Shown here piece by piece: positions 220 through 64,000 of a stretch of 64,000 bases of DNA. The position numbers and the translations under genes are program-made. The stretch comes from Penicillus capitatus (taxonomy: Eukaryota > Plantae > Chlorophyta): NCBI GenBank assembly GCA_965649825.1, contig OZ287703.1, positions 434,001-498,000 on the forward strand. The letters are read 5' to 3'. The notes beneath the pieces were generated by a model. The model saw only the letters and a program-made list of their open reading frames with translations. It was not told the origin of the DNA and did no database searches. Every line of letters starts with the position of its first letter. Position 1 is the stretch's first letter.

Positions 220-3200
220 CTAGAGATGTCCAAGGAAAATAGCATCTGTAATCATGTCTGCAAAGACCTTTCCAAATGCAGAAGCCAGTGCGTCTGCTAC
301 ATTAGCGTTCATTGCAATGTTCTGGAAAACTCTTGACAGATCTGCATCTCCAAGCGCCTCATGAAATACTCCATCTGCCGCGGCGGCCATTTCCTAAACA
401 GCAGGGCATTCATCAACTTCCAAAGCAGCATTAGAAGGAGCAACACCTGCAGTCGATCGACACACGCGTGCTCTCCAAAAGCTACGGTGTGTACACTCAG
501 GGGACGGTATTGTTCAGCCATCTCCCACATCTTCTCCATTACGAATCGAGGATCATCATGTCCATCGCCATCGGACATGAAGATGAGGACAGGCAGCTCA
601 GTGGCCTCTCTGTTGCTCAGAATATCACATGCCATATTCAAAGGAGGCAAGAAGGCTGTGTTCCCTTCGTTACATTCCAGAAGCTCCAGGTCTGCTTGAA
701 GCGGCACCCTTTGCATCACCTGCCGGGCAGAATCATCGAACTGAATGACACTGACGAGATCCGTCGTCGACTGATCTCTCAATCTCTGATCCAGGAACTG
801 TTTGAATGCGTTAGAGAGATGATCCCAAGGATCTCCCCACATCGATCCAGACTCATCCAGACAGAATATGAAGTGAAATCCAAGGCGGGAATTGACCTAA
901 GGTACAAACACTCTTCAATGAAGGATTCCAACATGCTTCATTCGCGTACTTCACAGTTTCCAAACACATCTTTCCACATCAATTCAAACGTCGCATCATC
1001 GTTATAGTGCTGAACAAATTCATGCATCATCTTGTCAGTGTCGTGCGTGATTCTGCAGAAGAGCAAATGGATGTCCTTCTCCTTCAGCCTTGCCATAACG
1101 CCGCTCGCTGTCAGTCCATGCGGATCACCCTCCGGATACCTAGATCCCAAAACCTCATTTCTAGCTGTCCATGTGCAAAACTGTTCGCACACCTGTCGTC
1201 TCCACAGTCATTGATACTTTGTCCGTGTCCAGGTGCGTCACCGATGAACACACAGAAACGAACCTTGCTTTGCCAACCATGCATGTCAGCCACAGCATCC
1301 AACGCTCCCAACACATCTTCTGGAGTATCCGTTCCGCCGCTTGCTGAACAACGGCCAAGGAAATCTGTCACGTCGTTTGTGTCCGAAGTGAACGATAAGA
1401 GATCAATTCTGTCGACATCTCCATAGTCTTTGTACGCGACCATGGCAAAACGATACTCCAACTCAATGTCGGGATGCTCTTGCTTGATCTTCTGAGAGAT
1501 ATGTTCTGAGATTCCCTACAATCAGCACTCGATCACCTTACATCGCCGATGACGATTCCTACCTTGATCTGCTCTTTGGCAGCGCTCATCCAATACATCA
1601 TGGATCCGGTACAGTCGAGGGCAAAACAGATATCCACCGTGAATGCAGATGGCTTGTTTCCTCTCAACAGCTTCGCTTCTCGTTCAGTCTCCATCGCTTC
1701 CAACAGAGTCGGAAACACCGTCTCATTGTTCTTCAGAATATCTTTGACTGTCTTCGCCTCTCCTTCGCGGAATAGAGCAGCGTTTTGCCAATCGATGAGG
1801 TTCTTCAAGTTTGATCTGTGCAGTCTGGCTGCACTTTGCATTCTGTCCGAGATGCTTTCTAAAGCATCTGGCACCATCTGAGGCAATGCCGCCGTAATCC
1901 ATTTTGGATAGCACTTCTTGACAAAGAACTGTTCCGGACCAACGCCCATTGCCAAAACATCAATTCCCAGATCTTCTTCAATCTTGTGGAGTACACTTGC
2001 CAGTCTCACACCAGAACTTCCATATCCGTCTGTGATCACAAACATCTTCTTCGGTCCACGGACACTACTCTGATCGAGAAGTTTCGCAGCAAAGAGCAAC
2101 GCATCTGCATCCATGGTGGAGAGATCGTTTCTGTGCAGGAGCATGGAGAAGAGCAAGGCAATCGAAGACTCTTCCCAAGCAGCATCTGGCAGTTTGATCG
2201 GATAGATTCCTTCTCCAAATAGAATGACTGAGAAGTCCTCGATATTCATCTGCTTCAGTGCACTGATCAGCATCAAGATTGTTTGCAGTGCACATGAACG
2301 CTTCCTGCCTTGGACCATCGATGCAGAGATGTCCAGCAAAAGAGCCACAGAGTACTCGGATTTCCCTCCACCTTTCTTGTTTGCAAAGATCTTCTTTTCA
2401 TTGCCCTTCGTCACGATGTGCTTAATGAATCCTGGCAGATGGATGGATGGACCCTGGATGTCGGCCCTCTTCCTTGTAAAGCGATTCTGTGGAAGGATAT
2501 TCTCCAGAGCCTCTACCATCTGCGTGATCTCTGCACTCAGTAACTCCTCGGCCTTCATCCAGGCAGCTTCAGCCTTTCTTAATTGATCTTTGTTCTCTCC
2601 ATGCATCCGTAGACTCTGCTGCAAATCGAGAAGGCCTTTTTCAACGGCGTCCATTGAAGAATCATCAAGTTCCAGATTGGCACCCAACAGATGACTCATC
2701 TCAGTCTCGAAAGGGAGTCCATCTGTCGTATATCCACAGTCAAAGAAGCTGCTCCTGTTCTGGCTTCCAGTTAGAATTGTCAAAGACTGTTTTCTGAGAT
2801 CTGCCGATAGTACGGATTCATCCAGATTGAGTATCAGGTCTCTGGGACAACGAGCCTGAGCGACAGGCTGTTGAATGCTACGCAGTAGTTCCCTCTTCTT
2901 CACAATCTTGGCCAGTACACATTCCATTTGCTGAACCATGAGTAACGATAGCGCATCTGGCAGTTCATTGACAGAAAGCACATCCAAGACTTTGTAACGC
3001 GCAGCAGCTTTGCTCCAGAGACCTTCGATCTGGCTCATGATATCCTTTTGTGCCTCGTCCTTGAGATTTAGAACAATGAGATCGATTCCTTTGACATCAC
3101 AGACAGAGGTGTAGTCTTCAGGAGACCTTTCCTGAGTGAGGCCATCCACGATCATGAGCATCACCCGATTGCACTGCAGCTTTTCATTCTCAGACAACGC

Positions 3201-6200
3201 ATTTGGCCAGACCTTCTCAGCGATGTGCCTCAAAGCCGAAGCAGGATACGTGCCTTGATCAAACGAAAACGATTCCAGTATCTTCTGGCCAATGAGAGGC
3301 GTGAAGGCATCATCCATCAGCTTCAACATCTGTTGCGATTTCCGATCGCCAAAGCGAGCCACAGCAAACGGATGCTCCAGTCGCTTCAGCGTCTCCATAA
3401 CGAGCACAAGCGCTTCTCTCATCTGGATCTCCTTGGTGATCATCGATCCCGAATTGTCGACCACGATGCACCATTCGATCACATGCTTCTCGGCTGTGCA
3501 ACTGTAGTACTCTTCAAAAAATGCTTCCCATCTGCGCATCACTTCTGTTAGGAAACGCATAAATGGCTCGCATTCAATCAGCAGGGAATAGGTCCATCGT
3601 TCATGACGGACAGGTTCTGCCTCAATTGGGTTTTCCAGTTCCCTTTCCTCGACATCTGCTCTGGTAATTGCAGTGTCTTTGTAGATCTTGGCAAGATCTG
3701 CATTCTGAACACTACTCTGTGTGGCTTTTCCATCTGCATTGATCTCAACTGGAACCATTTCCATCGCTTCATTCTCGGCAGCATCCGCGTAGATCTCAAA
3801 CTCCTGACTGATCGCATCTGTTCTTCTGGCGGACGGACCTGCTCGCTGACTCTGTCCACCATGTTGTCTGCTTCCTTCGATGTGACAAGGGAGCTTTATA
3901 TCGCTATGTTCTGTAACTCCCTTCTCTTCTTCTGCAGGACACGGTTGTTCTTCGGGTTGAGCCTCGCGGGGCTTCCAAACTTGAACTTCCTTTTGCACCC
4001 GAATGGTAACTTTTTGATCGAGGATGTTGCGCTGTCCTTGTACAGATGGAGATTCAGAGTATGAGGCGACCACACGTGACAGATTCTGGAACCAGTCTGA
4101 CTGCATGTCATCAATTGTTGTGACAGCATCTGCATCTGTTCCAGAAAATGCCAAAGAACAAGATGTACTCGGTCCTGCAAAACTGGAATCTCTCCAAGAA
4201 ACATCTCCTTGATTCTTCTCGAGAAGGTGATTCTCTGAAGGCATCGGGAAGTCTTCTGTCGTGCTTCCTTTTGCAACAGTCATTGCGCCGAACTCATTGA
4301 GGATCCTATCGAATTCAACTGGCAAGTTACTCTTAGGAATGGCATTCAGATGTTGTACAATGCCATCGAGCACATCCTTCACAAATCCCGGAATCTCAAA
4401 GAGAGTGCAGCGCTCCAGGTATCGTTCAAAGAAGTGAACCTGAGAGATGAGGGACAGCCCTGTACAAACGACCCGACTGTCTGCATTCTTGTCCTCTTCT
4501 TTCTTTGGAATATGGGAATAGCGGACTGCCTCTTCGAATACTTCATTCCAGAAGTCTGCAGCTGCTTTCACTTTTGCGATTCCATCCACGATGCGATCCA
4601 ATGTGAGAGCTCTGAGTGACGAGTCTTCACTGGGTGATGCTGATGTATCAGCTATGCTCTCCATCACTGCTTTGAGAATGCCTTCGACTGTGGCAAGCTT
4701 CTCCATGTATCGAATGGTGCCCTCAACACCGGCGTCATCTGATTGATGAGTCGATACAACTTCGGTACCCGACATCTCCGTCTCTCTAGAGCTTTCACTT
4801 CTGAGGAATGCAAACAGTTCCTCTGGTCTTTCGAAGTTCTCCAACAGCCAATGCCACTCTCCGTTTTCTGAAACGGCGGCTGCTTCATTTTCGTCCGTAG
4901 ATCTCTTTGCCTCGTCTCCCGATGCGATTTCTTCACGTGCTGCTTCTTCTTCACTGCTGTCCTCGGAAGGCGACTCTTCTTGTACATTAGCGATTTCAAA
5001 CTTCAGACATTTGCCATCTGCACAGGAAGGCGAATCGCGTTTCTTCCAATGTCCTTTTCCATAGAACTCAGTCAGAGACAGCAGTAATGACATCTTGGCC
5101 AGACAGAGGCCTTCAAGGGTCAGTTCGGCTCTATATCCAATGGCACTCGCAGATAGGAGAATGTTCCAAACTGCTTGACTCTTCTCTCTCTTCTCCCAAC
5201 AACCCAAAGCAGCAAGAGAATCGAAGAGCTTCTTGATTTTAAGTAGGCCATCAATGGACTCCATCTGTGATTCGTCCATGTGGGTGACCGCGTTCTTTGC
5301 TTTCACCACGTCGCCAACAAGCTTGAAGATTCCCATCACAGCCGGTTCGGTGATTTCTTCGATCTTTTTTAGCAATTCTTCTTCATTTGCATTTGAATTG
5401 ACGCCAGACCAAGATTTAATAAGGGAATTAAACGCATCAGTAATCTGCTGCGGCAGAATGAGGAGCAGAATCGTCTTCTCGAGATTTTCATTTTCACCGG
5501 GATCCTTTTCCAAAAGATCCAGCACTATTCCATATGCATCGGTCGATAGTCCTTCAGAGATGGTTCTGCAAGCAGACATTGCTGTTTCTTTCGTTAGATC
5601 CATCTGCAGAGAACAAAGCTCATTTGCGAGCTCGACCGCCTTCTCTGGGTAATTGTCATTCAACACAGCAATAAAGCTGACAACTTTCGACAGAAGATCA
5701 TGGGCATGTGTTGCATGAGAAATGGCCGCAGGATCCAGTTCGCTCAATGCCTCGATCAGCGATTCTTCGGTGCTCTGAAAGTCAACAGGAGATGGCTCAG
5801 AACTCGTGCCCTCATCTGGTGGCAGCAATTCTCGCAACGTTTCCATTAACGGTTGCAGCATAAGATCAATGCCAACGTCGCGTGGCTTCAGCTGGATCCA
5901 CAACTTCATCAAGTCTACTAGCTTCGAGCGATGCTGTGCTTCTACAAACTGAAGCTCTGCTTCTATTTCCGAAGCCTTCTGCTGAGAGTCTGGTAAATAA
6001 AGTCCGTCTGATATCCTCAAAGCAGCCGACTTGATCTTCCTCAGAAGTTCGTGGCGACCAGTAGGAAGACGATGGAGGACAGCAAAGAGCGTTTCCACAA
6101 CAACCCTCCGGATGTTGTGATTCCTTTTTGTTCCACTCATGCGTCCATAAAGAGAACAGATTGGATCGCACACAGATTCCAGTTGAGCGCCCTGAAGTAT

Positions 6201-9200
6201 TGACTCGATCTTCTTTCTTGCTTTATCACTGGGTGAATCGCCAGCATGTCTAGTCAGTGGTCTCTTTTCTTGCTTATCCGTTTCAGACAACGCCCTCACC
6301 AGATCTCGCATCATGTCGCAGTTGATCTGATCTTCGTCTTGATGCAAGAGACGACAGAATGCTGTGACGATAGCCTCAGGATCACCAGAGCATAATTGCT
6401 TCACAGAGTCTCTCACACAGCTGCCGAGTATGGACAGTAGCATCTCCTCTCTGTTATTTTCGTTCAGTGATAAGGATTGCAATATGAATTCTCTGTGTTG
6501 GTGATCTTCTGGAAGCAAATCTGCAATGACTGTGTCGAGACTTGAACCAGCATCAGTCTTTAGGATACTCTCGACGATGCTTGCAATGAATCCAAAAGAA
6601 GCGATTTCTTCATCACTGGAGAGCATCAAACTCTTCAACAGGGTCACGATGTCGCAAAGCGTCGACTCTTGATCATCAAACAACGCTGTGATGGCCTCAC
6701 AACTGTTGTCAAGCTGGGTGGCACTGAAAGCATCAGGCAGGGCTGTTTTTATCACAGCGGCGGCGGCTTTCCACTGTTGTTTCTCTGTGCAGTCTGCATG
6801 CAACAGCATGTACATTGACTGAGCCACGGTTTGTATATCGACGGAAGCATTCGAGACTGCAGCCAGGGGAATGCATATCTCAGACATGTCGCTATGACCT
6901 CTCTCCTCGAAGTGATCCTTGAGTTTATCGAAGTAGTCTGCAAGTGTAGAGGATGGGCCAGCATTCCTTCTTGGTGCCTTTTCCAAGTGCTTCAGATGAT
7001 CAGCACAGAGCGAGACTGCCTCGTTAGGATCGCTGTCGAGAATACGACGTGCTAGTTCCGTCGTCACTTTCCACTCCTTCTGGAGGATTTCGACTTCGCA
7101 AAGCATCATCAGAAGAAAGGACTGTGCTGTGGATGGAGATGAGCTTATCTCTCTTAGAATGTCCAGATTTGGAAGACAGAAGGTTGTATTCTTGATAGCT
7201 AGCCCCGACCCGCTAGATTTCTTGCATGATTGCATCAGATTGGCCAATGTATTTGGTGTATCCGACACCGGAGCCACGATCGTCAACTTCTGATGCATCA
7301 ACTGACACTTTTCTGGTTCTTCGTGAACGAAAACGGCCTGTTCTGTCTGGAAGGTCAAGTCTTCCACTATCCACCCTTTCCCTTCTTTTGCTTGCACACA
7401 GATTTCAAACTGCTTCGAAGAGCGAAAGACTGTGGACACGTCATCCGATCCAAGAAACAGCGGCTCTAGATCTTTCTTCGGGCGTCCGCTTTTCCGTTCC
7501 GTCAGCGAAAGGATCTCAGTCAACTCCGACTGAGGGGCTTTGTTGAGAATCGAAAATTGACCAGTCGTGTTGATCTTGACATCTCTGCTCATGGTTTCTC
7601 CGGGTTTCACTGAACTCGATCGTACCCAACTCGTTGGAGTAATCTCCAGCTTCCCGGATGCCCATAAAAGATACACTTTGAAAGACAGTTTCTTTCCTGT
7701 GTCTGTGAGGAAAGTCACAGTGTGCTCTTGCTTCTTGAGCCGTCTCACTGTCCACTTCATTTCAACATCGATCTCTCCCTTTCCTTCGAAGCTGTAATGG
7801 GGATGATCAAAGGTGAAGTTGTCACTTTCTGGAGGATAAACAGTAACGAGAATATCGTCCCAGTTAATGAACTTGTTTCGGGCAGTGAGCTCCAGTGATG
7901 TCTCATTCTCCTTTACCATATGCACAAGCTGTTCTGTCGTAATCTTGAATTCAACAGTCTTCTGACAAATTTCTGGAACAGGATCTATCCACCTTCCACT
8001 GATCGTCAGCTGTCTTCGTTGGCATCCCTTTGCAGACACCGTTGTCTGAATCTTGAGGTTTTCTGAGCTGTCAGGACATCTCATCCACAAGTTTACTGGC
8101 ATTTCGCTGCCAACTGGTACACTTCCCGCAGAGGGTTCCGTCTTCAATGCATCTGATTTTGACTCAATGCTAAACACCACTGGAACGTCCCCCGTGTTCT
8201 TCACTCTGAGGCAACCTGTGGCTTTTTTGCCTTTCTTCACAGTTTGCATACCATACACACAGGCGACCTTCCCGTCCATTTCGTTCAACAGTACGAACTT
8301 TGGTCGACTGATCTTCGCTTTCAGCTTCAAGTGTTTGAAGCTCTGCACAGCTCCGATGACGACAGTGGATCCGACATCCTCCTCAGTGGCACTGGGTTTC
8401 AGTGTGAATTCCAGAGATTGTGTTTCTCTTGGCAGAAGCAACATCTTCTCTGGCGCCATGGAGAGTGCGCAACGGTTATTGTTGGATTGGATCTGGCCCT
8501 TGATCAACAAGGGCAGGTCTGTCACATTCCTGATGAAGATCTCGCGCTTCTGCTGTTCTGATCTCGGCAGCAAGACTCCAAAATCTATCTCCTCTGTACT
8601 GAGCTGTACAGCTAGTCTCTGGATCGTTGCACAAAGCTTGAAGCGATCGTTCATTTTTGTCTCAGGCGATTCGATTCGCCAACGCTCACAGATTCTTCCA
8701 ACTGCTCCTTCGGTGATGTGGAACGAGAACTGATGAGTTGATCTCCCGTAAAGACGGACCCTGCTCGGGGCCAGCACAGAGAAACCACTAGTAGATGATC
8801 CCTCAGCTGGAGCCACAGAGACAATCATTGTCGAAGCCGTTCGGTTCATCACTTCCACAACGCACACGTGTGCCCTCGATCCAGTCTTCTTGTCGTCTGC
8901 AGCGTACAGATGTGTTCCAAAATCAATACTGATGTGTTTGGGGTCGAGGAAGCAGACCCCTGTGTCTGACTGCGTGACAATGAGCTTGGCACTGTGGTGC
9001 AGTTTGGTCCCTGGAAGCAAGAGATTATCTTTCTCTTTCAGTCGCATAATTCTTTCATGTTCATCTCTGACATGCTCGAAGCACAACATGCATTGGACTC
9101 TGGCGTCAGCAAGGGACAGAGCAGAGTGGCAGCGGTTTTCAGCTCTGAAAGCAATGGCTTCTTTCTGATTGGATGACAAAGGGCTATCTCCCAGTATGAC

Positions 9201-32347: not shown

Positions 32348-32599
32348 CGCTGTACACCTTCTCCTTTTGGCTGGGAAGATGCTTCTCTTTCGGCAGTGTG
32401 CCAGATGGGAAGATGACAGACGTGTGAAAATCTCGCGTTCCATCGAACCGACGAGACAGTAGTGAATGTAATGGGCTGAAAAATGGAGTTAACATTCATC
32501 GTCATGTCGGCTTTGAGGCAGACCCAGCCAAGTACACCCGTAATCGTGGAGAAGTCTGTAAGAGCGATGGAACTTAGAACTTCAGCAGAACAGATTCGA

Positions 32600-57000: not shown

Positions 57001-60000
57001 ATCGCTAACGTACCTGGCAAGAACATCTTGGAAGATCTCTTGCAGTTGTCCGATTTCAGTGATCTTGACAAATTACGAGAAAGCCTTCGCAATAAAGGAA
57101 TGGATCTTACATCTGCGACGCTGAGTGACCAGCAGATCCAATACCTTCGTGTTTTTTCTTCCGTGCTGAGTCAACTTCCTCTCTCGGCAAGATCAAGACT
57201 GCTGCATAACTGGCGAACGTGTCAAGCATTTTCAAGTGCCAGAATGCCTGTTGAAGAGTACGATGAATTCTTGAAGGCGCACGAGAATCTACTCAAGACA
57301 GCTGTGCTAAAAATCCTTTTCTTTAGAAATGTGTTTGACGAAGAAACTAAAATGGTCATCAGCAAAGGTTGCTGCATTTTGCATAACCTTTGCAATGCTA
57401 TCTGCCATGAGGTTATAGAATGGATACAAAGCTTGCATTCTGACCTGCAGCGAGTAGTCGAGAATGCAGATACCCTTGTCGAAGATTGTGCATCAGCACG
57501 CAGAGATTACAACAAGAGTATTGCCTCATTCCTCGATGCACGCCATGAAAGAAGAAAAAGAACACAGCAAAACTGCATCCAAAAACTGAAGACTCTGGAA
57601 CAGCGTCGACAGAATCTTCGATCAGAACTGACAGAAATTACCAACGGGCTTTGTTCGCATTATTCTGACTTGTGGAGGGGAGCTACTCTTTACTTCAAAC
57701 ACGAAGGAATTTCTGACTGGTACATGCTAGAGAGCAATGGAATGCTAGACTTGAGTAGATCGCTGAATGTAGTATTGCAGAAGCAGCAAGTTCTTTATCA
57801 AGAAAAACACGTCACTGATTGCATCAATCTTGCAAAATATGAGCTGAAAAGTGTTGTTATCCAGTTGGAAATTCTAACTCTGGATCTGGATTCTTTTCTC
57901 CGGCTCGATGACGCAGTGGTCCAGATCGGAGTATCAGAAGGAGGCATAGGAAGAATACATTCTGTGAAGTATGGGTACGACTCGGGAAAACTGTTGCCCA
58001 TCTCCTACGTTGTCACCGATGAAGAGAGCTTTACACTTAGACTGTTGTTCACAGGAAAAGACAGCAATGAGTTCGCTAGGCAGTTCAAGTTGGGAGAGAT
58101 GGACAAACTCGTATGCTTTCGAGTCGATGGAGTAAAGTCTTGCGAGAGAAAACCTATTGTGAAATTCAGCATCGCCAAGAAGACAATGATTATTGGAGAG
58201 GAAGATCTTTCTATGCTGTCAGCAGTATCCTGCTCACAAACTTGTCCGGGTCCTTTGTCCCAATTATCCGAAAAAATGCACGCTCTCGTTAAAGAGTATG
58301 ATGAACATTTTGATGAGTTGCAGCAGAATATATGCCAGAACGGTGATGCAGTGAATGAAGAGAGAGAAGCATCTGCCAGCCTCAACATTTCAAGTGTCGA
58401 ACGTAGTTCTATTGAGAGAAGTCCACAAACACAGGCTACTACCAAGTGGAGTAATGTTCTTAATGAAATTACTCAGTTATTCCACGGGGTGCAGTCTGAC
58501 TTAGTGGCAGCGAGAGAAAATCAGGGGATGCACTTGAACAGCCAGAGAATTAGAGACGGGCTAAAAAGCATTGGTGATGCAATGCAAAGAATGCAGGGAC
58601 TGGAATTCGACGAGAGCAAGTTGCATGTTGTCGATTTCGACCATGATGGCAAAGATCTCTCCTCTGCTTGGACCTTGGATATGAAATCGCCTTTTCTACG
58701 AATAAAAGAATGTATGGCCAAGATGCGGCGGTTGGGAGAAAGGAGCCTTGAACTGTTATCTACTGCAGCTCTTTACGCGTTGTTCCAGACCAGTCTGGCA
58801 GTTGTCTCGAATAAGGACTTTATTAACTTGGAAAAGGAACTGCAAGAGTGGAGAGTTCTGTTGAAAGACAGTCCCATGTCGTCCAATCAGAAAGAAGCCA
58901 TTGCCTTCAAAGCTGAAAACCGCTGCCGCTCTGCTCTGTCCCTTGCTAATGCCAGAGTCCAATGCATGTCTTGCTTCGAGCATATCAGAGATGAACATCA
59001 AAGAATTACACGACTGAATGAGAAAGATAGTCCTTTGCTTCCAGGGACCAAACTGCACCACGGTGCCAAGCTCATTGTCATGCCGTCGGACACAGGGATA
59101 TGCATACTTGACACAGAACACACCAGCATTGATTTTGGGACACATCTGTACGCTGCAGATGACAAGAAGGCTGGAGCGAGAGCACGCGTGTGCGTTGTGG
59201 AAGTAGTGAACCGAACAGCTTCGACGATGATTGTCTCAGTGGCTCCAGCCGAAGGACCGTCTACTAGTGGGTTTTCTGTGCTGGCACCGAGCAGGGTCCG
59301 TCTTTACGGGAGATCAACTCATCAGTTTTCGTTCCGCATCAACGACAAGGCAGTTGGAAGGATTTGCGAGCGTTGGCAAATCCAATCGCCCGAGACAAAA
59401 CTGAACGATTGCTTCGAGCTTTGTGCAAACATCCAGAGACTGGCTGTGCAGCTCAGTGCAGAGGAGATGGACTTTGGAGTCTTGCTGACGATTTCAGAAG
59501 AGCAGAAGCGCGAGATCTTCATCAGGAATGTGACAGACCTGCCCTTGTTGATCAAGGGCCAGATCCAATCCAACAAGAACCGTTGTTCACTCTCCATGTC
59601 GCCAGAGAAGATGTTGCTGCTGCCAAGAGAAACACAATATCTGGAATTCACACTGAAACCCAGTGCCACTGAAGAGAATGTCGAATCCACTGTCGTCATT
59701 GGAGCTGTACAGAGCTTCAAGTACTTGAAGCTGAAAGCGAAGATCAGTCGACCAAAGTTTGTGTTCTTGGACGAGATGAACAAGAAACTTGAGGGTGTGC
59801 ATGACATGCGAGCTGTGAAGAAAGGCAAGACAGCAAAAAGTTCTGTTAGCTTAAAGAACGAAGGGGATGTTCCGGTCACTTTTAGCGTCAATTCAAAATT
59901 GGATGCATTGCAGATCGAACCTTCCGCTGGAAGTGTACCCATTGGCAGCATAATGCCAGTGAAGTTGATGATAAAATGCCCTGGCAACTCAGAAAACCTC

Positions 60001-63000
60001 AACATTCAGGCAATTGTGTCTGCAAAAGGATGTCAACAAAGTCAGTTGAGAATTCGTGCGAGGTGGATAGATCCTGTTCCAGAGTTCCGCGAGATATCGG
60101 TTAAGTTCAAGATTGCAACAGAGCAACTTGTGCATATGGTAAAGAAGGATGAGAGATCGCTGGAGCTCACTGCTCGAAACAAGCTCATCAACAGGGATGA
60201 CATTCCCGTTACTGTCTATCCTCCAAAAAGTGATGACTTCACATTTGATCGGCCCCATTACAGCTTTGAAGGAAAGGGAGAGATCGATGTTGAAATGAAA
60301 TGGACAGTGAGATGGCTCAAGAAGCAAGAGTACACTGTGACCTTCCTCACAGACGCAGGGAAGAAACTGTCCTTCAAAGTGCATCTTTTATGGGCAGCGG
60401 GGAAGCTTAAGATCACTCCAAAGAGTTGGTTACGACTGAATCCAGTAAAAGCTGGAGAAACCATGAGCAGAGACATCAAGATCAATACCGATCGTCAGTT
60501 TTCCATACTCAACAGACCCCCTCAGTCCAAGTTGACGAAGACCTTCTCACTGACGGAAGTTCGCAGTGGGCGTCCTAAGAAAGGACAGAAGCCCTGTCTC
60601 CTCGGATCAGATGATGCGTCGATAGGTTTCAGATCTTCGAAGCAGTTCAAAGTCTGTGTAAAAACGAAAGAAGGAACGGGCTGGATAGTTGAAGACTTGG
60701 CCTTCCAGACAGAACAGGCCGTTTTTGTTCACGAAGACCCAAAGAAGTGTCAGTTGATGCAGCAGAAGTTGACGATCGTGGCTCCAACGCCAGATACACC
60801 AAATGCATTGGCCAATTTGATGCAATCATGCAAGAAATCTACCGGCATTGGATCAGTAGGCAAGAATACAGCCTTTTGTCTTCCAAATCTGGACATTCTG
60901 AGAGAGATAAACTCATCTCCGTCCACATTGCAGTCCTTTCTTCTGATGATGCTTTGCGAAGTCGAAATCCTCCAGAAGGAGTGGAAGGTGACGACGGAAC
61001 TAGCACGTCGTATTCTCGGAAGAGATCCTGACGATGCAGCTTCGCTCTGTGCTGATCATTTGAAGCACTTGGAACAGGCACCAAGAAGGAATGCTGGCCC
61101 ATCCTCTACACTTGCAGACTACTTCGAGACGCTCAAAGATCACTTCGAGGAGAGAGGTCACAACAACATGTCTGAGATATGCATTCCTCTGGCTGCTGTC
61201 TCGAATACTCCGGTCAACATCCAAACCGTGGCTCAGGCAATGTACATGCTGCTGCATGCAGACTGCACAGAGAAACAACAGTGGAAATCCGCCATCGCCG
61301 TGATAAAGACAACCTTGCCTGATGCTTTCAGTGCTGTCAAATTTGACAGTGCTTATGATGCCGTTGCAGAGTTGCTTGATAGTCAGAAATCGGCGCTCTT
61401 CGACATCTTGGCTCTGTTGAAGCGTTTGATGCTCTCTGATGATGAGGAGATCGCTTCGTTCAGATTTGCCACAAGCATTGTCGAGAGTCTCCTAAAAACT
61501 GATGCTGGTTCAAGTGTCGACACAGTCATTGCAGGTTTACTTCCAGAAAGTCACCAGCACAGAGAATTCGTATTGCAATCCTTATCACTGAACGAAAATA
61601 ATAGAGAGGAGATGCTACTGTCCCTGGTCAGCAACCGTATGAGAGACTCAGTGAAGCAAATGTGCTCTGGTGATCCTGAGACTATCGTCACAGGATTCTG
61701 TCGTCTTGTGAAGGAAGACGAGGATCAGATCAACTGCGACATGATGCGAGATCTGGTGAGGGCGTTGTCTGAAACGGGTAAGCAAGAAAAGAGACCACTG
61801 ACTAGACATGCTGGCGATTCACCCAGCGAAAAAGCAAAGAAGAGGATCGAGCCAATACTTCAGGGTGCTCAACTGGAATCTGCGTGCGATCCAATCTGTG
61901 CACTTCACGGACGCGAGAGTGAAACAAGAAGGAATCACAACGTCCGTAGGGTTGTTGTGGAAACGCTCTTCGCTGTCCTCCATCGTCTTCCTACTGGTCG
62001 CCACGAACTTTTGAGTAACATCAAGTCGGCTGCTTTGAAGATATCTGACAGATTTTTTCCGCCAAACTCTCAGCAGAAGGCTTCGGACATAGAAAGAGAA
62101 CTTCAGTTCGTAGAAGCACAGTATCGCTCAAAGCTGGTAGACTTGATGATGCAGTGGATCCAGCTGAATCCACGCGATGTTGGCATTGATCTTGTGCTGA
62201 AACCGTTGATGGAGATGTTGCGAGAACTGCTGGCACCGGATGAGGGCACGAGCTCTGAGCCGTCTCTTGTTGACTTTCAGAGCATAGAACAATCTCTGAT
62301 CGAGGCATTGAGCAAACTGGATCCTGCAGCTATTTCTCGTGAAACACATCCTTACGATCTCCTTTCGAAGGTCGTCGGCTTTATTGCCGTGTTGAATGAG
62401 AACTGCCTAGAGAAGGCGGTCGAGCTCGCAAATGAGCTCTCTTCTCTGCAGATGGATCCAACAAAGAAAACAGCAATAGCTGCTTGCAGGGCCATCTCTG
62501 AAGAACTATCGACAGAAGCATTTAAAATAGTGATGGATCTTTTGGAAGAAGATCATGATGATGACGAAAATGTCGAGAAGTTGATTCTGCACCGCATTCT
62601 ACCGCAGCAGATTACTGATGCGTTTGACACCCTCATTGAATCTTGGTCTGACGTGGATTCAGATGCAAATGAAGAAGAATTGCTAAAGAAAATCGAAGAA
62701 ATCAGCGAACCGGATGTGATGGCCACCTTCAAGCTTGTCGGCAATGTGACGAAAGCAAAGAAATCGGTCTCCTGCATGGACGAATCACAGATGGAGTCCA
62801 TTGATGGCCTTCTTAAAATCAAGAAGCTCTTCGATTCGCTTTCCCCTCTGGGTTGTTGGGAGAAGAGAGAGAAGAGTCGAGCAGTTTGGAACATTCTCCT
62901 GTCTGCGAGTGCCATTGGATATGGAGCCGAACTGACACTTGAAGGCCTCTGTCTGAGCAAGATGTCATTACTGCTGTCTCTGACTGAGTTCTATGGAAAA

Positions 63001-64000
63001 GGACATTGGAAGAAACGGGAATCACCAACCTGTGCAGATGACAGATGTGTGAAGCTCGAAATCGCTGATGTACCAGAAGAGTCGCTTTCCGAAGAAAGCA
63101 GTGATGAAGAAGCAGAAGCAAGCGAGGAAATCGCATCTGGCGACCAGGCAAAGGTATCCGAGGACGAAAATGAAGCAACTGTCGCTTCAGAAGATGGCGA
63201 GTGGCACTGGCTGTTGGAAAACTTCGAAGGACCAAAGGAACAGCTTGTTTCCCTTGAAGAAGAGAGTTCGAGGAAGACGGAGAAACAGGCCACTGAGATG
63301 GTATCGACTGATCAACCAGGCGACGTCTGTGGTCAGAGCAGTAGTGGATACATGGAGAAACTCGACAAAGTCGAAGACATTCTCCAAACAGTGATAGAGA
63401 GCATAGTTGAAACATCAACATCACCCATTAAAGATTCATCACTCAGAGCTCTCACATTGGATCGCATCGTGGATGAAATCACCAAAGTGAAAACAGCTGC
63501 AGACTCCTGGAAAGAAGTATTCGAAGAGGCAGTTCGTTATTCCCATATTCCAAAGAAAGAAGAGGAAAGGAATGCAGACAGTCGGGTCGTATGCGCAGGG
63601 CTATTCCTCATTTCTCAGATTCAGTTTTTTGAACGATACCTGGAGCTCTGCACGCTCTTTAAGATTCCGGAATTTGTGAAGGATGTGCTTGACGGCATTG
63701 TGCAACATTTGGATGCCATTCCTAAGAGCAACTTGCCAGTAGAATTCAGTAGAATCCTCGAAGGATTTGGTGTGTCAGTTGCAACAAGAGGAACCACGAC
63801 AGAAGACTTTTCAATGCCGTCAAGGCGAAGTTTCTTTGATCAATCTGAAATGAGTAGTAGTTCCCGGAGAGATGAAAACCGCCGAAGACAAGGCCTTTCC
63901 TCTTTTTGTGCTGATAAAACAAGCAATGCAGAGGATGTCATGATAATCGATACTGCATACAAAAGCTTTCTCCGAAAACTGCCAAACATAATTTCGGGTT
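42061..64000 (+). CDS. Gene B: paralogue of gene A, giant midasin-like AAA+ protein, 3'-truncated by the window (at least 7,313 codons)
   Basis: ATG at 42061 (MEPSWKWFELSVLQEALKDSL...CIVQAYAVKVF...ILNWF) aligns with the N-terminus of gene A. After 42 kb the ORF track lists plus-strand ORFs only in the other two frames, consistent with frame 1 having no stop to the window end. Spot translations at 43501, 44461, 59101 and 63961 match gene A in frame. An upstream exon is possible (acceptor-like ctgctag at about 42054). Confidence 0.92.
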   Translation, partial: MEPSWKWFELSVLQEALKDSLDATDNNALENMCLAIDAIISRGSIETTETDLTNAGMVVFFKCIVQAYAVKVFKTKTVASGPLSRILNWFVKNISSKQRRVIFEILFCEKEYDASRLQVATVAKKKEGKMKLERDIKKASPTILLQLLALTNFTNQETDAVLNLLLYAICKDSDSDVNTTSSKPRTGEKTIEDEMIASKELLSLFLNRSLISDTPHGNTSAEITEEIQADGHIDVSQHDSESKEDQEADHGDESISDTLLVTAMNTCSSEDAFSAFLSNLNTLYNGSLVFKKPQLHRILETMLSLEEVDASAFLLGGVKSELVDNVALFSDIAEYLFVAPVLYLTSPVLSFDNICGLISLCAEHIVLETPLRFPDVFSVFVKHSEVKDGNTQWICERLHLLSLFLSDETESVDASSISEAFVESLFAAFLTLEDQMHWEDEENLHFDVFADLTTIIEYCHKNASFPVFSSLLKVSQLNIDVFTQLSGKFCSPGMMYRWGNQPDTEDVIALLELCKVPQSESIEWVLMALESLLESEAGRNEIYNSQRSDADWIEVCGTLLDKSSKESMATKAVPALVRLACTLGKDKCIHPINALMSEIEQLLCAELSTEDFSKFVTVLADLSADLLKEVIAAACNAAAGIERIEDVQFFSHLLTNLTDPSSERTEPLKDALFSALGELFGLMRECDGKGRINSLMELICFILDNRNALVHKVEARPSDNHTAAIPPFSSARFPDGQGIQSETASLTDLRRMIETFERPGLSLESSDLRNAVLQTYRPPCKEKEEDGASESKERSMILTATTEENIAMIQEVVADGNPVLLIGSTGVGKTATLTEVCRRRGVKFVRINMSSNLTPEDFLAKVNVDSSGKIVQELQPFADSFKNGVWVLLDEMNLAEEGALKVVIDAMESGEITICDQSSALSSTAVIKKHPDFRLFAAQNPWQAGKRERLSDSFMSQFSIMHFKELPRDEWREIVEKKIAEGRDNNPELIQKLAKQMTDFHCDVRERIAEGCSEKGSYATITNRELLMWTDMVLAEEELVQAEEKLGDHAWLIYGCRFRGDGRQLVQKVIGDRSLTFRSEGSRLEDANERFARIQGPCLRKDVTLVDQFWTAHFSSEPFPDEDARKAFDACAAVHRSVLRKIQGAEFMKTFGVYTTFSESWLAKWIADALENRLLGTDDWTGLGRLGTEIYCSRIRHDQAMSDVFDVFAQHFDLGLADVPSMTSSVPEMPVVLSDQMCQHLVSVAEAVRSEQPVLIEGTAGSGKTCLGKVIAFLLGNHYEQVTLTQESEPSAMLGECLPSSSPVGEGIVQWRDGPLTRAFVQGSVCIVDNIGQAEPVLQERINPVLESPKVLCLTERGDTEALRCRVLADGTWSSTPGPARGFQFIATFTPKGVAARGMDSLSKELTAALFNRFVTIHIDDPACGPDDEFRGALEAMVRCCLPRDRCEASLNAISDYCLRIRRFVSKSTQMFVSFRDFATLIDVATVLMIRRPEVEDQVALHCAMTVAFAAQMRDGDLRRSLCTEMGCPSDALGQLKLLDRFEKSSDLVLTESRKAHAQAVLLGAFVNKPVLLEGKPAVGKTSLVQGLKGFGGADKSVRALSNSDTTTIQDYFGTWIPSDSGFSFQKGILVQAMEGGDWFISDEFNLAPVAVIAALMPFLEGNCTVQIPGSDMRVSVHPDFRFFATQNPSRGGNDGRKQLPITVRNRFLAVDVEDFPRDELQEIVRDKFRGGRYEGIAEEMDSRALAELYFASADGLRLTMRDIVKIVRRYKMLKDEGRQKVTWAATAMSLLGPRATTTEETSRLTQLIESSFGSGGVTEAEACARKHVKRERQGVSFFQGKLHVHFHGFKLDNSPLWRDSLSGNGPPAVFQDKLVDLAFALKANEPVLLFGESAFKTELIKTWLELSGMTESVQRVHLTSQSEATDLIGQVQLLSFVDVLSSLASTGDFILSYLGQQLTEKSKPPTLKLKNVYICDLRERLRRRVLQFKHKLCRQEYDIGDEDSFSAVNLSDTVATSNTQDKQTSSNSEYEDDYSEFSSKISSDDSATNETDEDNVDDSEDSRTYEKEHDVQGSNSVEPNTFDQASDSLKEKSAELAEDDHLTFIDDVILKIPVLVNEILGEEIPAAVQRMVRRLEQLRMFIRSRDAQNSKPCFLFRDGPFVKAITMEHAFVVEDYDLCAQAVTERLNSALEVDPTFSIPEDVSFSARVAAEMEIPKKGYCFIATSHLDSENKKPQLSAATQSRLTQIRVPVYGTPDIMSIAEEKLRRTLHASEVESLPYVMGSIKGVRSEVVGDDPEHPCEDFRRILRWIAFVTAHPRNLTIRKRCMLGAKFFYLTGYPTDIQNEVLQKIFSDEFEKLKSDLELPVDRNPFEIEETAGDAGRVVSLMGQGLSLSVPPTLETPSGDNRLPELSLCVTDSVRENMARIFASICTNSPLLLEGAPGIGKTAVITQVARFLGTDLERINCSSDTSIEQLYGSVMPMYIDNRRVFEWRDGKLLKALKSQRWILLDEVNLLPAQVLESLVPLLNGSAEAEGFSVPGKLDSEPVAVHGTRIFATMNPAAEGGGRAKLSRSIKNTFTVVQIEGYDSEDLKQILGKQFEGLIEKGLVEEEDLQHVFDVYKKVEQSVEKGEIQGANRKHKLNLRDLKSVHDIVAGNIETQISHHRLMACDDDTEESEESFDKRPVVTSVIRKALQLVFKHRFDNRSAEKQIQRTIDEVVKPPQMELDQSDSPSIDLSVGDLVRIGNVYMEKDEARASQGSLVHTVKTIRQLELLATASQSQRAVLLEGPTCSKKTSLVRELASLAGVPLLVLSLHRDFEVSDLIGQWLPVSASNVASELSKKVFRLTDDAARLGLRIAGKLSQKRRAEFYGAMQACYTEGAETGTPQEMEEVVESVQLALETLKGCKLTKWQSLVRAADELKESAISSEDSSSSIVFKFVESDLIKALKSGSFVLFDNINAASPDVIERLLSLFEETPFLSLYEHSEGEELRPGDGIHPTTRIFATADRKKINTFGLSNPLLNRMIKIWLPEIDGDVLDPDVRLLESHETVEIASEALRSVEGGNVAAVLAVAFHARVRQLVQTSRITLTRDSKISFRMLQQALSVIRTWLERGEPLFNAVVWGLWRVYAAIVETNEDLKRLRQAIHESCEDTASLPLHKFYCVSSGRDALTPFQKESRNLQFVFASLLCACMKHLLKHIQNVHLDAETSRSLAVSIKDYFCRLHPQEAENAVDIVEGVCTVPEVVQLCRDHGGLLSEYFKDISEKEEKILKYFCQNPERLISQTKEFISQSTFADWKLRKAFLEDMCSVLDAVFCILDVQFRNRNQEFERVRELFQKIYQIKHLMCCFFPLEKETFGKEVSVLEKHLGRCTDRAVKYNLQKRLSEVICETDTKLSRSIVRLMRSTDASTAERNRTGIAFALSALDWKTTLLLPQGLLVSAREDFCALEILDVQRKLSRISILKEVHDLLKVLPLPEDKNLLHVDNRSLFGLGVKAIRDTVSAFRNFVFGSSRSDISTHSKGLEEAESVNIAVERLHLILRSSDSCFALSDELLAAVDFHVDIMSYLLEDRRRNKNATLTRGDIRNCHELFNRLRRSTQSIAKSEFCLPWIALFESSVKIDVPYKIVRCSQENLDREIFDGEGPTSAVLLVGDLDSGTSLSDLVSLVLFEKEASSSDSEKIHVNVLHYMWSKECSSKKKWMEQWTKNHKDNYCFSFSEEELLSVDSFPRQPLSRLGITIVACLSTLAIHGKDGGVEGKRASDVNQRFISGLEKQMTSYLSEVELWSNKEDDNLFHHLVQLDACLVQSQKQGLNENGKSLDRFLRVFSEVKLMAEESKLEKALDAIKEKLLASGWQSTSIAFSFRNLMIKLADYSVQELTSCLNELLRQTESKFGDYLIAMDMIASVLKLKKLLIQYATECLDADDLSVWKKCNDLCYFVSEVVKYFIDFLIVKDDKMELNRSKPLEDFDQWHEALVKQTAELEIPASLLQENDLEDIFLALKNQFKQQLKEENEKASLARASLLGTQVKEGITDTSSTVLKSKAEVQASKVKSLKSKFQDLWKKAKDQSQPATFVMQEAVKAVQALDRLKEDELNDITLARYQNRLQNLRMELDKPQVEEIGKRQSAISNELVGLLSKRLQCMHAADFSFAHQHPNSCSSFQYQQFQIHMRQLEDVAFEKSSTKEEIEYLIHTASNRQKHSLLQQALEALCQCCKLQNTDEGRRQLGGLSSLHIFSDQLSNRLAFEADRDTHNELLNCAVAELVQKRAEYLIEEYYELLAGWKSGKVGKSLEAVLDLCSDERFSMVHAYSTLEEMDGCTKQLQNDLASLTALSKNGLCFASPSLSMEDVAVLFSVNPDFLCNFLLNPVKTSDQDSVPVEFDFSANQQGGLLSMLAYQQEDGSRLLVFDRSSDVEGFLKAMKTVVVDEWGENVSQDENDLGVEEIFVAFHFVLMPCVFSQQQTGHLESIIKLAPSEPSQKKITDLETSIDHYQESIQKLRSQLLQKGLGQERDLDILEVDKNNSNSMKEMENEMERKKRELMQVKNEVDAYRSEICSMLMRTLQDLLTTGLVCFCKIIQSNRLESLLRNGNTTSVDTVHALYEAVLCEVRYSISKRRNMNVKAEQEFKHWCQSCNEFCEGQLKKLSNEDPLRKAAEILCKCALIGNQRALQRMSSATKSLSNSTFSFMNLGAKAENLATSLIETCTHNWCNGSEIEKISENLLQWEEKCRGFGEKGDVDDPISLDLAYLRNLILHSVGCCCSYAHKIYPVSWYEETLLPKLEESVKEKVLLSMPSSDEEELKAEMKLLPCCWASHTTSLQTSIVEDTLVNPFQLTYILEQCSAVNAPLYQSVSYAGQLFVRGILELESTLHNISQTNKIPIITSEECQNLDTLLKQLLEMCGESLPVMTVKQTHRRFSELSAQIVELTNAMLQTRKHPRPYLTDYLGRICEQWWYETASMCLQKLPAEHKSATNTLNQRIANVPGKNILEDLLQLSDFSDLDKLRESLRNKGMDLTSATLSDQQIQYLRVFSSVLSQLPLSARSRLLHNWRTCQAFSSARMPVEEYDEFLKAHENLLKTAVLKILFFRNVFDEETKMVISKGCCILHNLCNAICHEVIEWIQSLHSDLQRVVENADTLVEDCASARRDYNKSIASFLDARHERRKRTQQNCIQKLKTLEQRRQNLRSELTEITNGLCSHYSDLWRGATLYFKHEGISDWYMLESNGMLDLSRSLNVVLQKQQVLYQEKHVTDCINLAKYELKSVVIQLEILTLDLDSFLRLDDAVVQIGVSEGGIGRIHSVKYGYDSGKLLPISYVVTDEESFTLRLLFTGKDSNEFARQFKLGEMDKLVCFRVDGVKSCERKPIVKFSIAKKTMIIGEEDLSMLSAVSCSQTCPGPLSQLSEKMHALVKEYDEHFDELQQNICQNGDAVNEEREASASLNISSVERSSIERSPQTQATTKWSNVLNEITQLFHGVQSDLVAARENQGMHLNSQRIRDGLKSIGDAMQRMQGLEFDESKLHVVDFDHDGKDLSSAWTLDMKSPFLRIKECMAKMRRLGERSLELLSTAALYALFQTSLAVVSNKDFINLEKELQEWRVLLKDSPMSSNQKEAIAFKAENRCRSALSLANARVQCMSCFEHIRDEHQRITRLNEKDSPLLPGTKLHHGAKLIVMPSDTGICILDTEHTSIDFGTHLYAADDKKAGARARVCVVEVVNRTASTMIVSVAPAEGPSTSGFSVLAPSRVRLYGRSTHQFSFRINDKAVGRICERWQIQSPETKLNDCFELCANIQRLAVQLSAEEMDFGVLLTISEEQKREIFIRNVTDLPLLIKGQIQSNKNRCSLSMSPEKMLLLPRETQYLEFTLKPSATEENVESTVVIGAVQSFKYLKLKAKISRPKFVFLDEMNKKLEGVHDMRAVKKGKTAKSSVSLKNEGDVPVTFSVNSKLDALQIEPSAGSVPIGSIMPVKLMIKCPGNSENLNIQAIVSAKGCQQSQLRIRARWIDPVPEFREISVKFKIATEQLVHMVKKDERSLELTARNKLINRDDIPVTVYPPKSDDFTFDRPHYSFEGKGEIDVEMKWTVRWLKKQEYTVTFLTDAGKKLSFKVHLLWAAGKLKITPKSWLRLNPVKAGETMSRDIKINTDRQFSILNRPPQSKLTKTFSLTEVRSGRPKKGQKPCLLGSDDASIGFRSSKQFKVCVKTKEGTGWIVEDLAFQTEQAVFVHEDPKKCQLMQQKLTIVAPTPDTPNALANLMQSCKKSTGIGSVGKNTAFCLPNLDILREINSSPSTLQSFLLMMLCEVEILQKEWKVTTELARRILGRDPDDAASLCADHLKHLEQAPRRNAGPSSTLADYFETLKDHFEERGHNNMSEICIPLAAVSNTPVNIQTVAQAMYMLLHADCTEKQQWKSAIAVIKTTLPDAFSAVKFDSAYDAVAELLDSQKSALFDILALLKRLMLSDDEEIASFRFATSIVESLLKTDAGSSVDTVIAGLLPESHQHREFVLQSLSLNENNREEMLLSLVSNRMRDSVKQMCSGDPETIVTGFCRLVKEDEDQINCDMMRDLVRALSETGKQEKRPLTRHAGDSPSEKAKKRIEPILQGAQLESACDPICALHGRESETRRNHNVRRVVVETLFAVLHRLPTGRHELLSNIKSAALKISDRFFPPNSQQKASDIERELQFVEAQYRSKLVDLMMQWIQLNPRDVGIDLVLKPLMEMLRELLAPDEGTSSEPSLVDFQSIEQSLIEALSKLDPAAISRETHPYDLLSKVVGFIAVLNENCLEKAVELANELSSLQMDPTKKTAIAACRAISEELSTEAFKIVMDLLEEDHDDDENVEKLILHRILPQQITDAFDTLIESWSDVDSDANEEELLKKIEEISEPDVMATFKLVGNVTKAKKSVSCMDESQMESIDGLLKIKKLFDSLSPLGCWEKREKSRAVWNILLSASAIGYGAELTLEGLCLSKMSLLLSLTEFYGKGHWKKRESPTCADDRCVKLEIADVPEESLSEESSDEEAEASEEIASGDQAKVSEDENEATVASEDGEWHWLLENFEGPKEQLVSLEEESSRKTEKQATEMVSTDQPGDVCGQSSSGYMEKLDKVEDILQTVIESIVETSTSPIKDSSLRALTLDRIVDEITKVKTAADSWKEVFEEAVRYSHIPKKEEERNADSRVVCAGLFLISQIQFFERYLELCTLFKIPEFVKDVLDGIVQHLDAIPKSNLPVEFSRILEGFGVSVATRGTTTEDFSMPSRRSFFDQSEMSSSSRRDENRRRQGLSSFCADKTSNAEDVMIIDTAYKSFLRKLPNIISG
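43900..47870. repeat. Inverted near-identical tract 1, right arm
   Basis: Partner of 20450-24420; coordinate sum 68319. Confidence 0.93.
44450..51400 (+). other. Six-module AAA+ ring of gene B
   Basis: The six Walker A/B sets match gene A, e.g. GSTGVGKT at about 44527, GKPAVGKT at about 46783, GAPGIGKT at about 49384 and GPTCSKKT at about 50428. Confidence 0.92.
48405..52440. repeat. Inverted near-identical tract 2, right arm
   Basis: Partner of 15670-19705; coordinate sum 68109. Confidence 0.92.
59100..60790 (+). other. Ig-like (ASH/PapD-like) repeat array of gene B
   Basis: Colinear with 7290-8970 of gene A (TSIDFGTHLY, EEMDFGVLL..IFIRNVTDLPL, VSLKNEGDVPVTFSV). Confidence 0.6.

Follow-up and report, generated by a model that had tools for sequence, protein, structure and literature searches.

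The contig OZ287703.1 of the green alga Penicillus capitatus (assembly GCA_965649825.1) was analyzed from position 434,001 to position 498,000; this stretch of 64,000 nucleotides is called the window here, and all positions are counted within it. The window carries two giant genes, called A and B, each encoding a six-module AAA+ ring on a single chain. Midasin (Rea1/Mdn1) is an ATPase of ribosome assembly, which removes factors of the Rsa4/Ytm1 type from pre-60S particles. It is rather likely that A and B are two intact paralogues with a function, that they belong to a distinct sister family branching deeply from midasin, and that their products work as mechanical remodellers in the manner of Rea1. 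A first-pass annotation, made from the letters of the window alone, had described a duplicated, midasin-derived family of AAA+ proteins with Ig-like repeats and VWA domains, possibly acting in defence. The coordinates of all features are collected in Table 1.

A six-frame scan of the window, whose GC content is about 47%, gave two exceptional stop-free frames, one of 8,252 codons on the minus strand (1536-26291) and one of 7,315 codons on the plus strand (42055-63999). Stop-free runs of such length cannot be due to chance at this GC content. The minus-strand frame breaks off in the middle of a VWA motif, but it reads on to a stop codon past four GT-AG introns of 47, 53, 53, and 53 nt, all near the 3′ end. 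Thus, the predicted size of about 8,600 residues is right for gene A once the introns are reconstructed. The frame of gene B is still open at the end of the window, and its VWA region falls beyond that 3′ edge. The two genes lie head to head, 15.8 kb from each other, in a divergent rather than a tandem arrangement. Their products are 69% identical over 7,400 residues, and with two intact frames the giant paralogues of the first-pass annotation are real. The homology of the A N-terminus with B reaches upstream of the first in-frame methionine codon of A, and a splice acceptor lies exactly at 26292. A tentative first exon of 12 nt (26333-26322, ATG TCC GTC TTG), followed by a 30-nt GT...AG intron with a CTAAC element, would provide an in-frame start codon. 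As for exon structure in general, the neighboring genes (28.8-32.5 kb of the window, 5157-7206 of the related locus L002, and locus L008) have short introns between many small exons. In the giant genes, a single exon covers 22-25 kb, and the introns of A are confined to the extreme 3′ end, possibly also to the 5′ end. In a third type of paralogue (see below), the frame breaks at similar positions, namely at the junction of the N-terminal domain and the ring, and within or just after the ring. An Rfam scan of the window gave no match.

The best PDB match of the ring is Rea1/Mdn1 (E = 4e-109), followed by NorQ/CbbQ/CobS (about 1e-8 to 1e-5) and dynein (1e-3). In a plain BLAST comparison with canonical midasin, the best alignment was out of register (AAA1-3 against AAA3-5) because of the odd/even periodicity of the modules. 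The register was settled by a profile-profile matrix with module profiles made from 20 members of the family described below and 31 canonical midasins. In this matrix, AAA3, AAA4, and AAA5 of A score highest against midasin AAA3, AAA4, and AAA5, respectively. The odd/even parity holds in all six modules, AAA1 pairing with odd midasin modules and AAA2 and AAA6 with even ones. In addition, residues 7860-8140 of A match the terminal MIDAS domain of about 64 canonical midasins (1e-13 to 1e-8 in a phmmer search, with which BLAST agrees). The alignment of this second VWA domain includes a midasin-specific extension of about 120 residues and the conserved DxSxS, Thr, and Asp. In the phmmer search, VWA1 gave three weak matches to canonical midasins (about 1e-5), and VWA3 and VWA4 gave none. 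These results support the derivation of the A and B proteins from midasin, as the first-pass annotation had proposed.

The resemblance to midasin comprises six AAA_5 modules in one chain, alternating lid types with AAA_lid_7 after the odd modules, and a one-to-one correspondence of AAA3-5. It also comprises a long linker between the ring and the VWA region and a MIDAS domain with its extension and an intact DxSxS/T/D site. The differences are also considerable. The N-terminal domain of A is 800 residues long, compared with about 300 in midasin, and is unrelated to it in sequence, and the linker has no detectable similarity. Neither region has a Pfam match; at E<=1, a family profile of the N-terminal domain matched nothing in the PDB and that of the linker matched no midasin chain, which is a test of sequence similarity only. 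The AAA4 P-loop of A and B is degenerate, and the module carries an acidic insert of 200 residues. Furthermore, A contains an Ig array and three VWA domains that midasin lacks; two of these follow the MIDAS domain, which is therefore not terminal. A has about 3,500 extra residues relative to canonical midasin. The long region rich in aspartate and glutamate (D/E) that is typical of midasin, several hundred residues before the MIDAS domain, was not found; in its place there are stretches of about 100 residues with 22-28% D+E. The Pfam domains MDN1_4th and AAA_lid_5, which are recorded on canonical midasin loci, were not found in the Pfam scans of A. Finally, the A/B family is multi-copy and forms a separate clade.

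Residues 800-1999 of A were used as the query of an exhaustive HMMER search of 1.84 billion cluster representatives. I found about 35-40 clusters with one long colinear match, graded from 82% to about 30% identity and up to 7,954 residues in length. The rings of these members begin at residue 700-950 or so, and the N-terminal domain is 680-960 residues long where it is complete. Canonical midasins follow as a class of their own, with 4,800-5,600 residues matched in 8-9 separate stretches. The P-loop spacing of the family (the first P-loop, the next at about +440, the third at about +310, a gap over the degenerate AAA4, and then AAA5) was seen in at least 20 members. The four canonical P-loops of A, at residues 834, 1269, 1586, and 2523, follow this pattern, while canonical midasins have six regular P-loops. 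In a neighbor-joining (distance) tree of AAA3-5 from 20 family and 31 canonical sequences, the split between the family and the canonical midasins had a bootstrap value of 100/100. The mean distance was 1.35 within the family, 0.71 within the canonical midasins, and 1.87 between them. A, B, and the related protein P0034 cluster with a Bryopsis protein (99% bootstrap). The separate clade, the different Walker pattern, the extra domains, and the several copies per genome support the view that A and B are not ordinary MDN1 orthologues but belong to a clade of their own, in line with the first-pass annotation.

The catalytic layout was read from the family alignment. Throughout the family, AAA1, AAA3, and AAA5 have both Walker A (GxxGxGK[ST]) and Walker B (hhhhDE). 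AAA2 has an intact Walker A but DN in Walker B. AAA4 is degenerate in both Walker A (GPTsFKT) and Walker B (lED.DL), and AAA6 has GPTCSxKT and DN. Thus, Walker B has DE in AAA1, AAA3, and AAA5 of the family; in canonical midasins, it has ED in AAA1, DE in AAA2-5, and DN in AAA6. From these motifs, ATP is probably hydrolyzed at three alternating sites (AAA1, AAA3, and AAA5) across the family.

The members come from scattered lineages. Bryopsis sp. KO-2023 has two family genes (BSKO_02574 and BSKO_10124), both labelled 'hypothetical protein'. The rotifer members, from Rotaria sp. Silwood1 (CAF3709476.1), Adineta ricciae (CAF1156114.1), and Didymodactylos carnosus, are called 'unnamed protein product', or 'Midasin' in UniRef. 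Those of Hondaea fermentalgiana (GBG29381.1) and Pelomyxa schiedti (KAH3757886.1) carry the label 'Dynein heavy chain, cytoplasmic'. An Epipyxis sp. protein (EukProt) and a JGI 'MoxR-like ATPase' are further members. The names 'Dynein heavy chain' and 'Midasin' are automatic and have no described function behind them. These relatives share the ring register, the P-loop spacing, and the degenerate AAA4 with A and B, and the similarity of the Bryopsis members extends to parts of the N-terminal domain, linker, and Ig region. On the other hand, their rings are merely 30-43% identical, and most models are truncated or have no detectable similarity at the N- or C-terminus. Among family members, the N-terminal domain of A is weakly common only to the Bryopsis proteins. 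In a Rotaria protein of 6,456 residues (P0186), all four VWA domains are colinear with those of A (33% identity over 1,020 residues). The four-VWA array with the MIDAS homologue in second place was seen in A and in this protein; the other members are truncated or their array was undetected. A word-indexed homologue search with the last 1,200 residues of A gave no match. This null is not read as absence because long proteins seem to be missing from that index, whose matches to the ring query were all shorter than about 2,100 residues and included no full-length midasin; long relatives were recovered by the exhaustive search of representatives. Among viral contigs, there were no family relatives, and the one match was an ordinary MoxR-like gene of 312 residues. 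A 7,479-residue family gene of Rotaria magnacalcarata is mentioned in passing by Nowell et al. 2021 (PMC7943196). A literature search for midasin-like proteins, paralogues, or homologues gave nothing else on the family. It follows that the first-pass term 'protist system' was too narrow, since a green alga and bdelloid rotifers have members. The architecture is indeed without a described function, but it is not unique to this genome and already lies in databases as hypothetical or misnamed proteins.

The domain composition of A was determined by running Pfam on overlapping slices of the protein, and Pfam's own threshold decides between passing and sub-threshold matches. All six AAA modules predicted before were found as AAA_5 in A, and B has the same AAA_5 type with five stretches passing. 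The four predicted VWA domains of A were also all found by Pfam. As for the predicted array of about five Ig-like repeats, the presence of Ig domains was borne out, with one passing match and one or two below the threshold. The count of five was not, although it is a plausible number of beta-rich units of about 110 residues. The third unit of A is marginal, and nothing supports the remaining two. A self-comparison of the five putative units with hhalign gave no repeat signal, and an AlphaFold2 model of the region from an alignment of A and B only had a predicted local distance difference test score of 29, too low to be of use.

Table 1. Features of the window, with positions in nucleotides and residues in the encoded protein.
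Feature	Position	Residues	Strand	Remarks
Gene A	220..26291		minus	exons 26291-1563, 1515-1193, 1139-950, 896-447, 393-220; stop 222-220; 8,621 codons
A N-terminal domain	23892..26291	1-800	minus	paralogue-specific, ~40% identical to B; synonymous divergence saturated
A hexa-AAA ring	16092..23894	800-3400	minus	Pfam AAA_5 x6 and AAA_lid_7
A AAA1	23382-23807	829-970	minus	AAA_5
A AAA2	22041-22502	1264-1417	minus	AAA_5
A AAA3	21132-21548	1582-1720	minus	AAA_5
A AAA4	18831-20624	~1900-2350	minus	AAA_5; acidic insert inside
A acidic insert in AAA4	19740..20327	1989-2184	minus	28-31% D+E; 36% identical to B, with a 74-residue indel
A AAA5	18318-18740	2518-2658	minus	AAA_5
A AAA6	16968-17774	~2840-3108	minus	AAA_5
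A lids	after AAA1, AAA3, AAA5		minus	AAA_lid_7 ('Midasin AAA lid')
A linker	9012..16094	3400-5760	minus	about 2,300 residues; proximal half strongly diverged from B
A beta-rich Ig region	7287..8984	5770-6335	minus	HYDIN/ASH/MSP-type
A Ig 1		5896-5973	minus	HYDIN/VesB/CFA65-type; passes Pfam threshold
A Ig 2		6020-6090	minus	MSP/CFAP65/BACON-type; sub-threshold
A post-Ig region	3522..7286	6336-7590	minus	about 1,250 residues; no Pfam match; ends in short acidic low-complexity stretches, 22-28% D+E
A VWA1	3027..3467	7609-7755	minus	Pfam VWA; DxSxS intact; kept in rotifer members
A VWA2 with N-terminal extension	1872..2714	7860-8140 (VWA2 7982-8119)	minus	midasin-type MIDAS; DxSxS, T, D present
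A VWA3	within 220..1631	8221-~8400	minus	VWA_4 model at 8221-8320, PF25106-type; DxTxS; spans introns 1-2
A VWA4 with C-terminal tail	within 220..1631	VWA4 8424-8574	minus	Pfam; DxSxS present
Gene B	42055..64000	7,315 up to the window end	plus	Met at 42061; still open at window end
B N-terminal domain	42055-44424		plus
B ring	44425-52014		plus	AAA_5 (five stretches pass), AAA_lid_7; AAA4 insert ~47992-48369
B linker	52015-59043		plus
B Ig region	~59071-60768		plus	same Ig domain match as A
RING-Cys-relay gene, MYCBP2-type	28835-30835		minus	multi-exon; RING and tandem-cysteine module; PDB 5O6C/6T7F, 242 residues, E 2.5e-47
PARG gene, microbial-type	31437-32488		minus	three exons; PF10021/TIGR02452
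Inverted-repeat arm 1	20394-24439 with 47925-43877			97.1% identity; blastn of the window against itself
Inverted-repeat arm 2	15654-19704 with 52455-48405			96.9% identity; blastn of the window against itself
Third, older tract	4236-9216 with 63822-58839			85.6% identity; blastn of the window against itself

The divergence between A and B is a mosaic. The identity is about 40% at residues 1-590, 94-99% across the ring (600-3400) with 36% in the AAA4 insert, 29-67% (mostly 30-55%) at 3780-5760, and 70-84% at 5760-7360. The synonymous divergence (dS) is 0.01-0.14 in the ring, rises to 0.2-0.6 in the C-terminal block, and is saturated (>2) in the divergent blocks. At the nucleotide level, the ring appears as two inverted-repeat arms of 4,049 and 4,051 nt. 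Precisely where the ring segments were converted (16000-24000 and 44000-52000), the GC content leaps to 56-61% against about 47% around them. The GC content at third codon positions (GC3) is 0.80-0.86 over most of the ring, 0.63-0.69 beside the ring edges and the insert, and 0.42-0.58 elsewhere.

The related assembly ERZ26696514 (locus L002) has an A-orthologue followed by a B-orthologue in tandem, not inverted. The C-terminus of its A-orthologue is 88% identical to A. The N-terminal domain of its B-orthologue (copy 2) is 75% identical to B and 52% to A, while its ring is about 85% identical to both. The AAA4 insert of B is orthologous to that of this copy. In the ring, orthologues differ by a dS of 0.2-0.7, clearly more than A and B of the window differ from each other. 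Hence, the duplication predates the species split, and recurrent gene conversion has homogenized the rings since. Thus, the A/B duplication is old, with saturated dS, and older than the split from the sister species. Judged from identity and dS, concerted evolution is limited to the ring, and the AAA4 insert is excluded from gene conversion. The first-pass observation of a conserved motor with variable accessory blocks was correct, and it is accounted for by this ring-limited conversion. The ring GC3 is 0.75 in copy 2 of L002, 0.61 in the more distant locus L003, and 0.52 in the solitary third paralogue (L001 and L005); it is raised only in copies with a nearby partner. This pattern fits GC-biased gene conversion. 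When orthologues from the two species are compared, omega lies between 0.05 and 0.54 throughout, also in the N-terminal domain and the insert. By this measure, both genes are under purifying selection and bear no sign of an arms race. The apparently hydrolytic AAA1/AAA3/AAA5-only layout across the family and the ring-limited concerted evolution are new here. As a separate observation, recombination between 15654-24439 and 43877-52455 would invert about 24.4-43.9 kb and swap the N-terminal domains and promoters with the frames intact.

Besides the tandem pair (on a contig of 159x coverage), ERZ26696514 has a third, older paralogue beside a UCH gene (on a contig of 180x). Its identity to A and B is about 48% in the ring and about 30% in the N-terminal domain. 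The same arrangement was seen again in ERZ25074695, and further members at about 40% identity came from two SRA runs. At L003, the VWA4-like C-terminal end of another copy (4917-5535, plus strand) lies about 1.6 kb upstream of the start of the next copy, with a rubrerythrin gene nearby. Tandem arrays are thus present in a third, more distant genome. At L002, a long terminal repeat (LTR) retrotransposon (12813-17500) splits the B-orthologue after about residue 950, with gag, protease, reverse transcriptase, and integrase on the opposite strand. Its two LTRs of 198 nt are identical, which indicates a recent insertion. The insertion echoes that of an LTR element in a rotifer homologue (PMC7943196).

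How might these proteins work? By homology with Rea1, they would be ATP-driven mechanical remodellers. The metal sites of the MIDAS/VWA domains would grip acidic residues of target proteins, and ATP turnover in AAA1, AAA3, and AAA5 would drive a movement of the linker, so that targets would be pulled from, or rearranged in, a large assembly. Anchoring of the machine, or the choice of its site, would probably fall to the N-terminal domain and the Ig array. The paralogues share the motor and the ligand-binding parts, and their different N-terminal domains, AAA4 inserts, and proximal linkers probably reflect other sites or other regulation. As a speculation, the acidic AAA4 insert could serve as an internal pseudo-ligand for the metal sites. 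I think that the target would be something other than the pre-60S ribosome because the family stands apart from canonical midasin.

Several points weigh against this remodeller. Its mechanism is drawn from the homology of the ring and one VWA domain. The transmission of force is assumed, since outside the family no relatives could be detected for the N-terminal domain, the linker, and the post-Ig region. In place of the long D/E-rich tether of midasin there are short acidic stretches. AAA2 and AAA6, with their DN motifs, may still count in the ATPase cycle. Moreover, a role outside ribosome biogenesis is inferred; the two midasin fragments that were looked up as candidates for a canonical MDN1 beside the family came from other samples than the family genes.

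A machine of conflict or innate immunity, as the first-pass annotation suggested, would be a giant AAA+/VWA sensor and remodeller, similar to RNF213 or to the bacterial MoxR-VWA conflict systems, whose variable blocks are recognition modules and whose repertoire is widened by duplication. Genomes carry more than one copy, with two in the window and no fewer than three in the related assembly, and tandem or inverted arrays occur at three loci. The distribution is patchy and includes the bdelloid rotifers, which are prone to horizontal gene transfer and have many copies. Paralogue-specific blocks lie beside a homogenized motor. Between A and B there are also genes for a RING-Cys-relay (RCR) E3 ligase and a microbial-type PARG. 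The RCR gene gave weak RING-like matches only in Pfam. The named relatives of the PARG are mostly from bacteria or phages (e.g., gp114 of Bacillus phage G at 36% identity). However, both genes are absent from five other family loci, and the closest PARG copy (64%) lies on a different contig and has no giant AAA gene within 10 kb. The two neighbors are treated as coincidental because neither recurs beside family genes elsewhere. The intergenic region at 33-42 kb has no Pfam domains and no notable repeats. In the protein itself, Pfam searches of A (together with B for RING/E3) found no effector, death-fold, TIR, nuclease, protease, or E3 domain, and PADLOC gave only noise at the level of the P-loop. 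The variable blocks are not hypervariable but old and kept between orthologues (omega 0.2-0.5), and the search of viral contigs gave no relatives. With no effector domain, nothing from PADLOC, the low omega in every block, and unconserved neighbors, the suggested defence role found no support, and I regard it as unlikely.

A variant of the Rea1-like remodeller is one acting on the cilium, the centrosome, or the cytoskeleton, in which Ig domains of the ASH/HYDIN/CFAP65/Cep192 type would target the motor to microtubule structures, and there it would assemble components or strip them off. All Ig matches fall in the ASH/MSP/HYDIN/CFAP65/CFAP74/Cep192 group, with a weak echo in the Pelomyxa member. 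The named host lineages (a green alga with flagellate gametes, rotifers, a chrysophyte, a thraustochytrid, and Pelomyxa) all build cilia or flagella. This agreement covers ciliated lineages alone. ASH-type Ig domains also occur in Golgi/trafficking and bacterial proteins and are therefore not diagnostic; a single Ig match passes the Pfam threshold, and the neighborhood has no pointer to cilia. Such targeting is improbable on this evidence. It is also conceivable that the family is a second ancient lineage of ring mechanoenzymes beside dynein/midasin with a non-ribosomal target, and that the inverted pair is a shufflon-like device in which the homogenized motors would be the recombination arms and inversion of 24.4-43.9 kb would swap the N-terminal modules, as bearers of specificity, for recognition or defence. 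This proposal is quite unlikely.

If A and B were ordinary, though divergent and duplicated, MDN1 orthologues, they would still act in 60S maturation. Their ring and MIDAS domain are homologous to midasin, UniRef automatically names some members 'Midasin', and a separate canonical MDN1 in the same genome could not be shown. However, the split from 31 canonical midasins has full bootstrap support (100/100), with a distance of 1.87 between the groups against 0.71 within the canonical one. The catalytic-site pattern is different, and MDN1_4th and AAA_lid_5 were not found in A. Compared with midasin, the protein is longer by about 3,500 residues and has three VWA domains more, and one genome has at least three copies. 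Rotifers, as animals, are expected to carry a canonical MDN1, and their members group with the family. Thus, orthology to MDN1 is very unlikely. That the genes are selfish or decaying DNA, either the cargo of a giant mobile element or pseudogenes, is hardly credible: they are multi-copy and patchy, one orthologue harbors an LTR retrotransposon, and a midasin-like segment was reported in the planarian Burro retroelements (PMC6431247), but each frame is intact for 22-25 kb and evolves under purifying selection, and the L002 element, being recent, on the opposite strand, and flanked by identical LTRs, is not a carrier. The gag/pol sequence of that element has no similarity to the window, and no likeness to gag, reverse transcriptase, or integrase was found anywhere in the window.

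Other known systems resemble the Rea1-like family in part. RNF213 is a giant single chain with six AAA modules, only some of them catalytic, which acts in innate immunity and lacks VWA or MIDAS domains. A and B are alike in being giant single-chain six-AAA rings with only some modules catalytic. Unlike RNF213, they have no RING/E3 module by Pfam (the nearby RCR E3 is a separate gene), and RNF213 is not among the PDB sequence matches of the ring. The eukaryotic VWA8 combines dynein/midasin-type AAA modules with a C-terminal VWA domain in about 1,900 residues. Its AAA modules are fewer, and it lacks an Ig array and a multi-VWA cluster. VWA8 was not recovered as a nearer relative than midasin in the searches run, which included no direct comparison with it. 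The bacterial MoxR-VWA systems (RavA-ViaA, NorQ-NorD, CbbQ-CbbO, and ternary conflict systems) belong to the same AAA+ clade, which is coupled to VWA partners (PMC7159879), and NorQ/CbbQ match at about 1e-8. They are homo-hexamers of subunits of about 300 residues with a separate VWA protein and often with effectors, whereas A and B are fused in one eukaryotic chain, with introns in A. A had no significant PADLOC match, bpMoxR being sub-threshold only.

Midasin and dynein are treated as the two eukaryotic heirs of a MoxR-like ancestor whose six AAA+ modules were fused in one chain. The window documents a third, clearly separate lineage beside them, which combines the midasin ring and MIDAS domain with a different catalytic layout, an Ig array, and four VWA domains. 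In addition, the locus shows clearly how gene conversion can be restricted to a single functional module of a giant gene: the converted module bears a strong GC3 signature, and its flanks are anciently diverged. The family is spread over scattered lineages, from a green alga to rotifers, under misleading automatic names. Defining it would correct these annotations and provide a natural variant on which the cooperation of ring, linker, and MIDAS can be studied. A further question that it poses is what large assembly besides the pre-ribosome needs such a machine.

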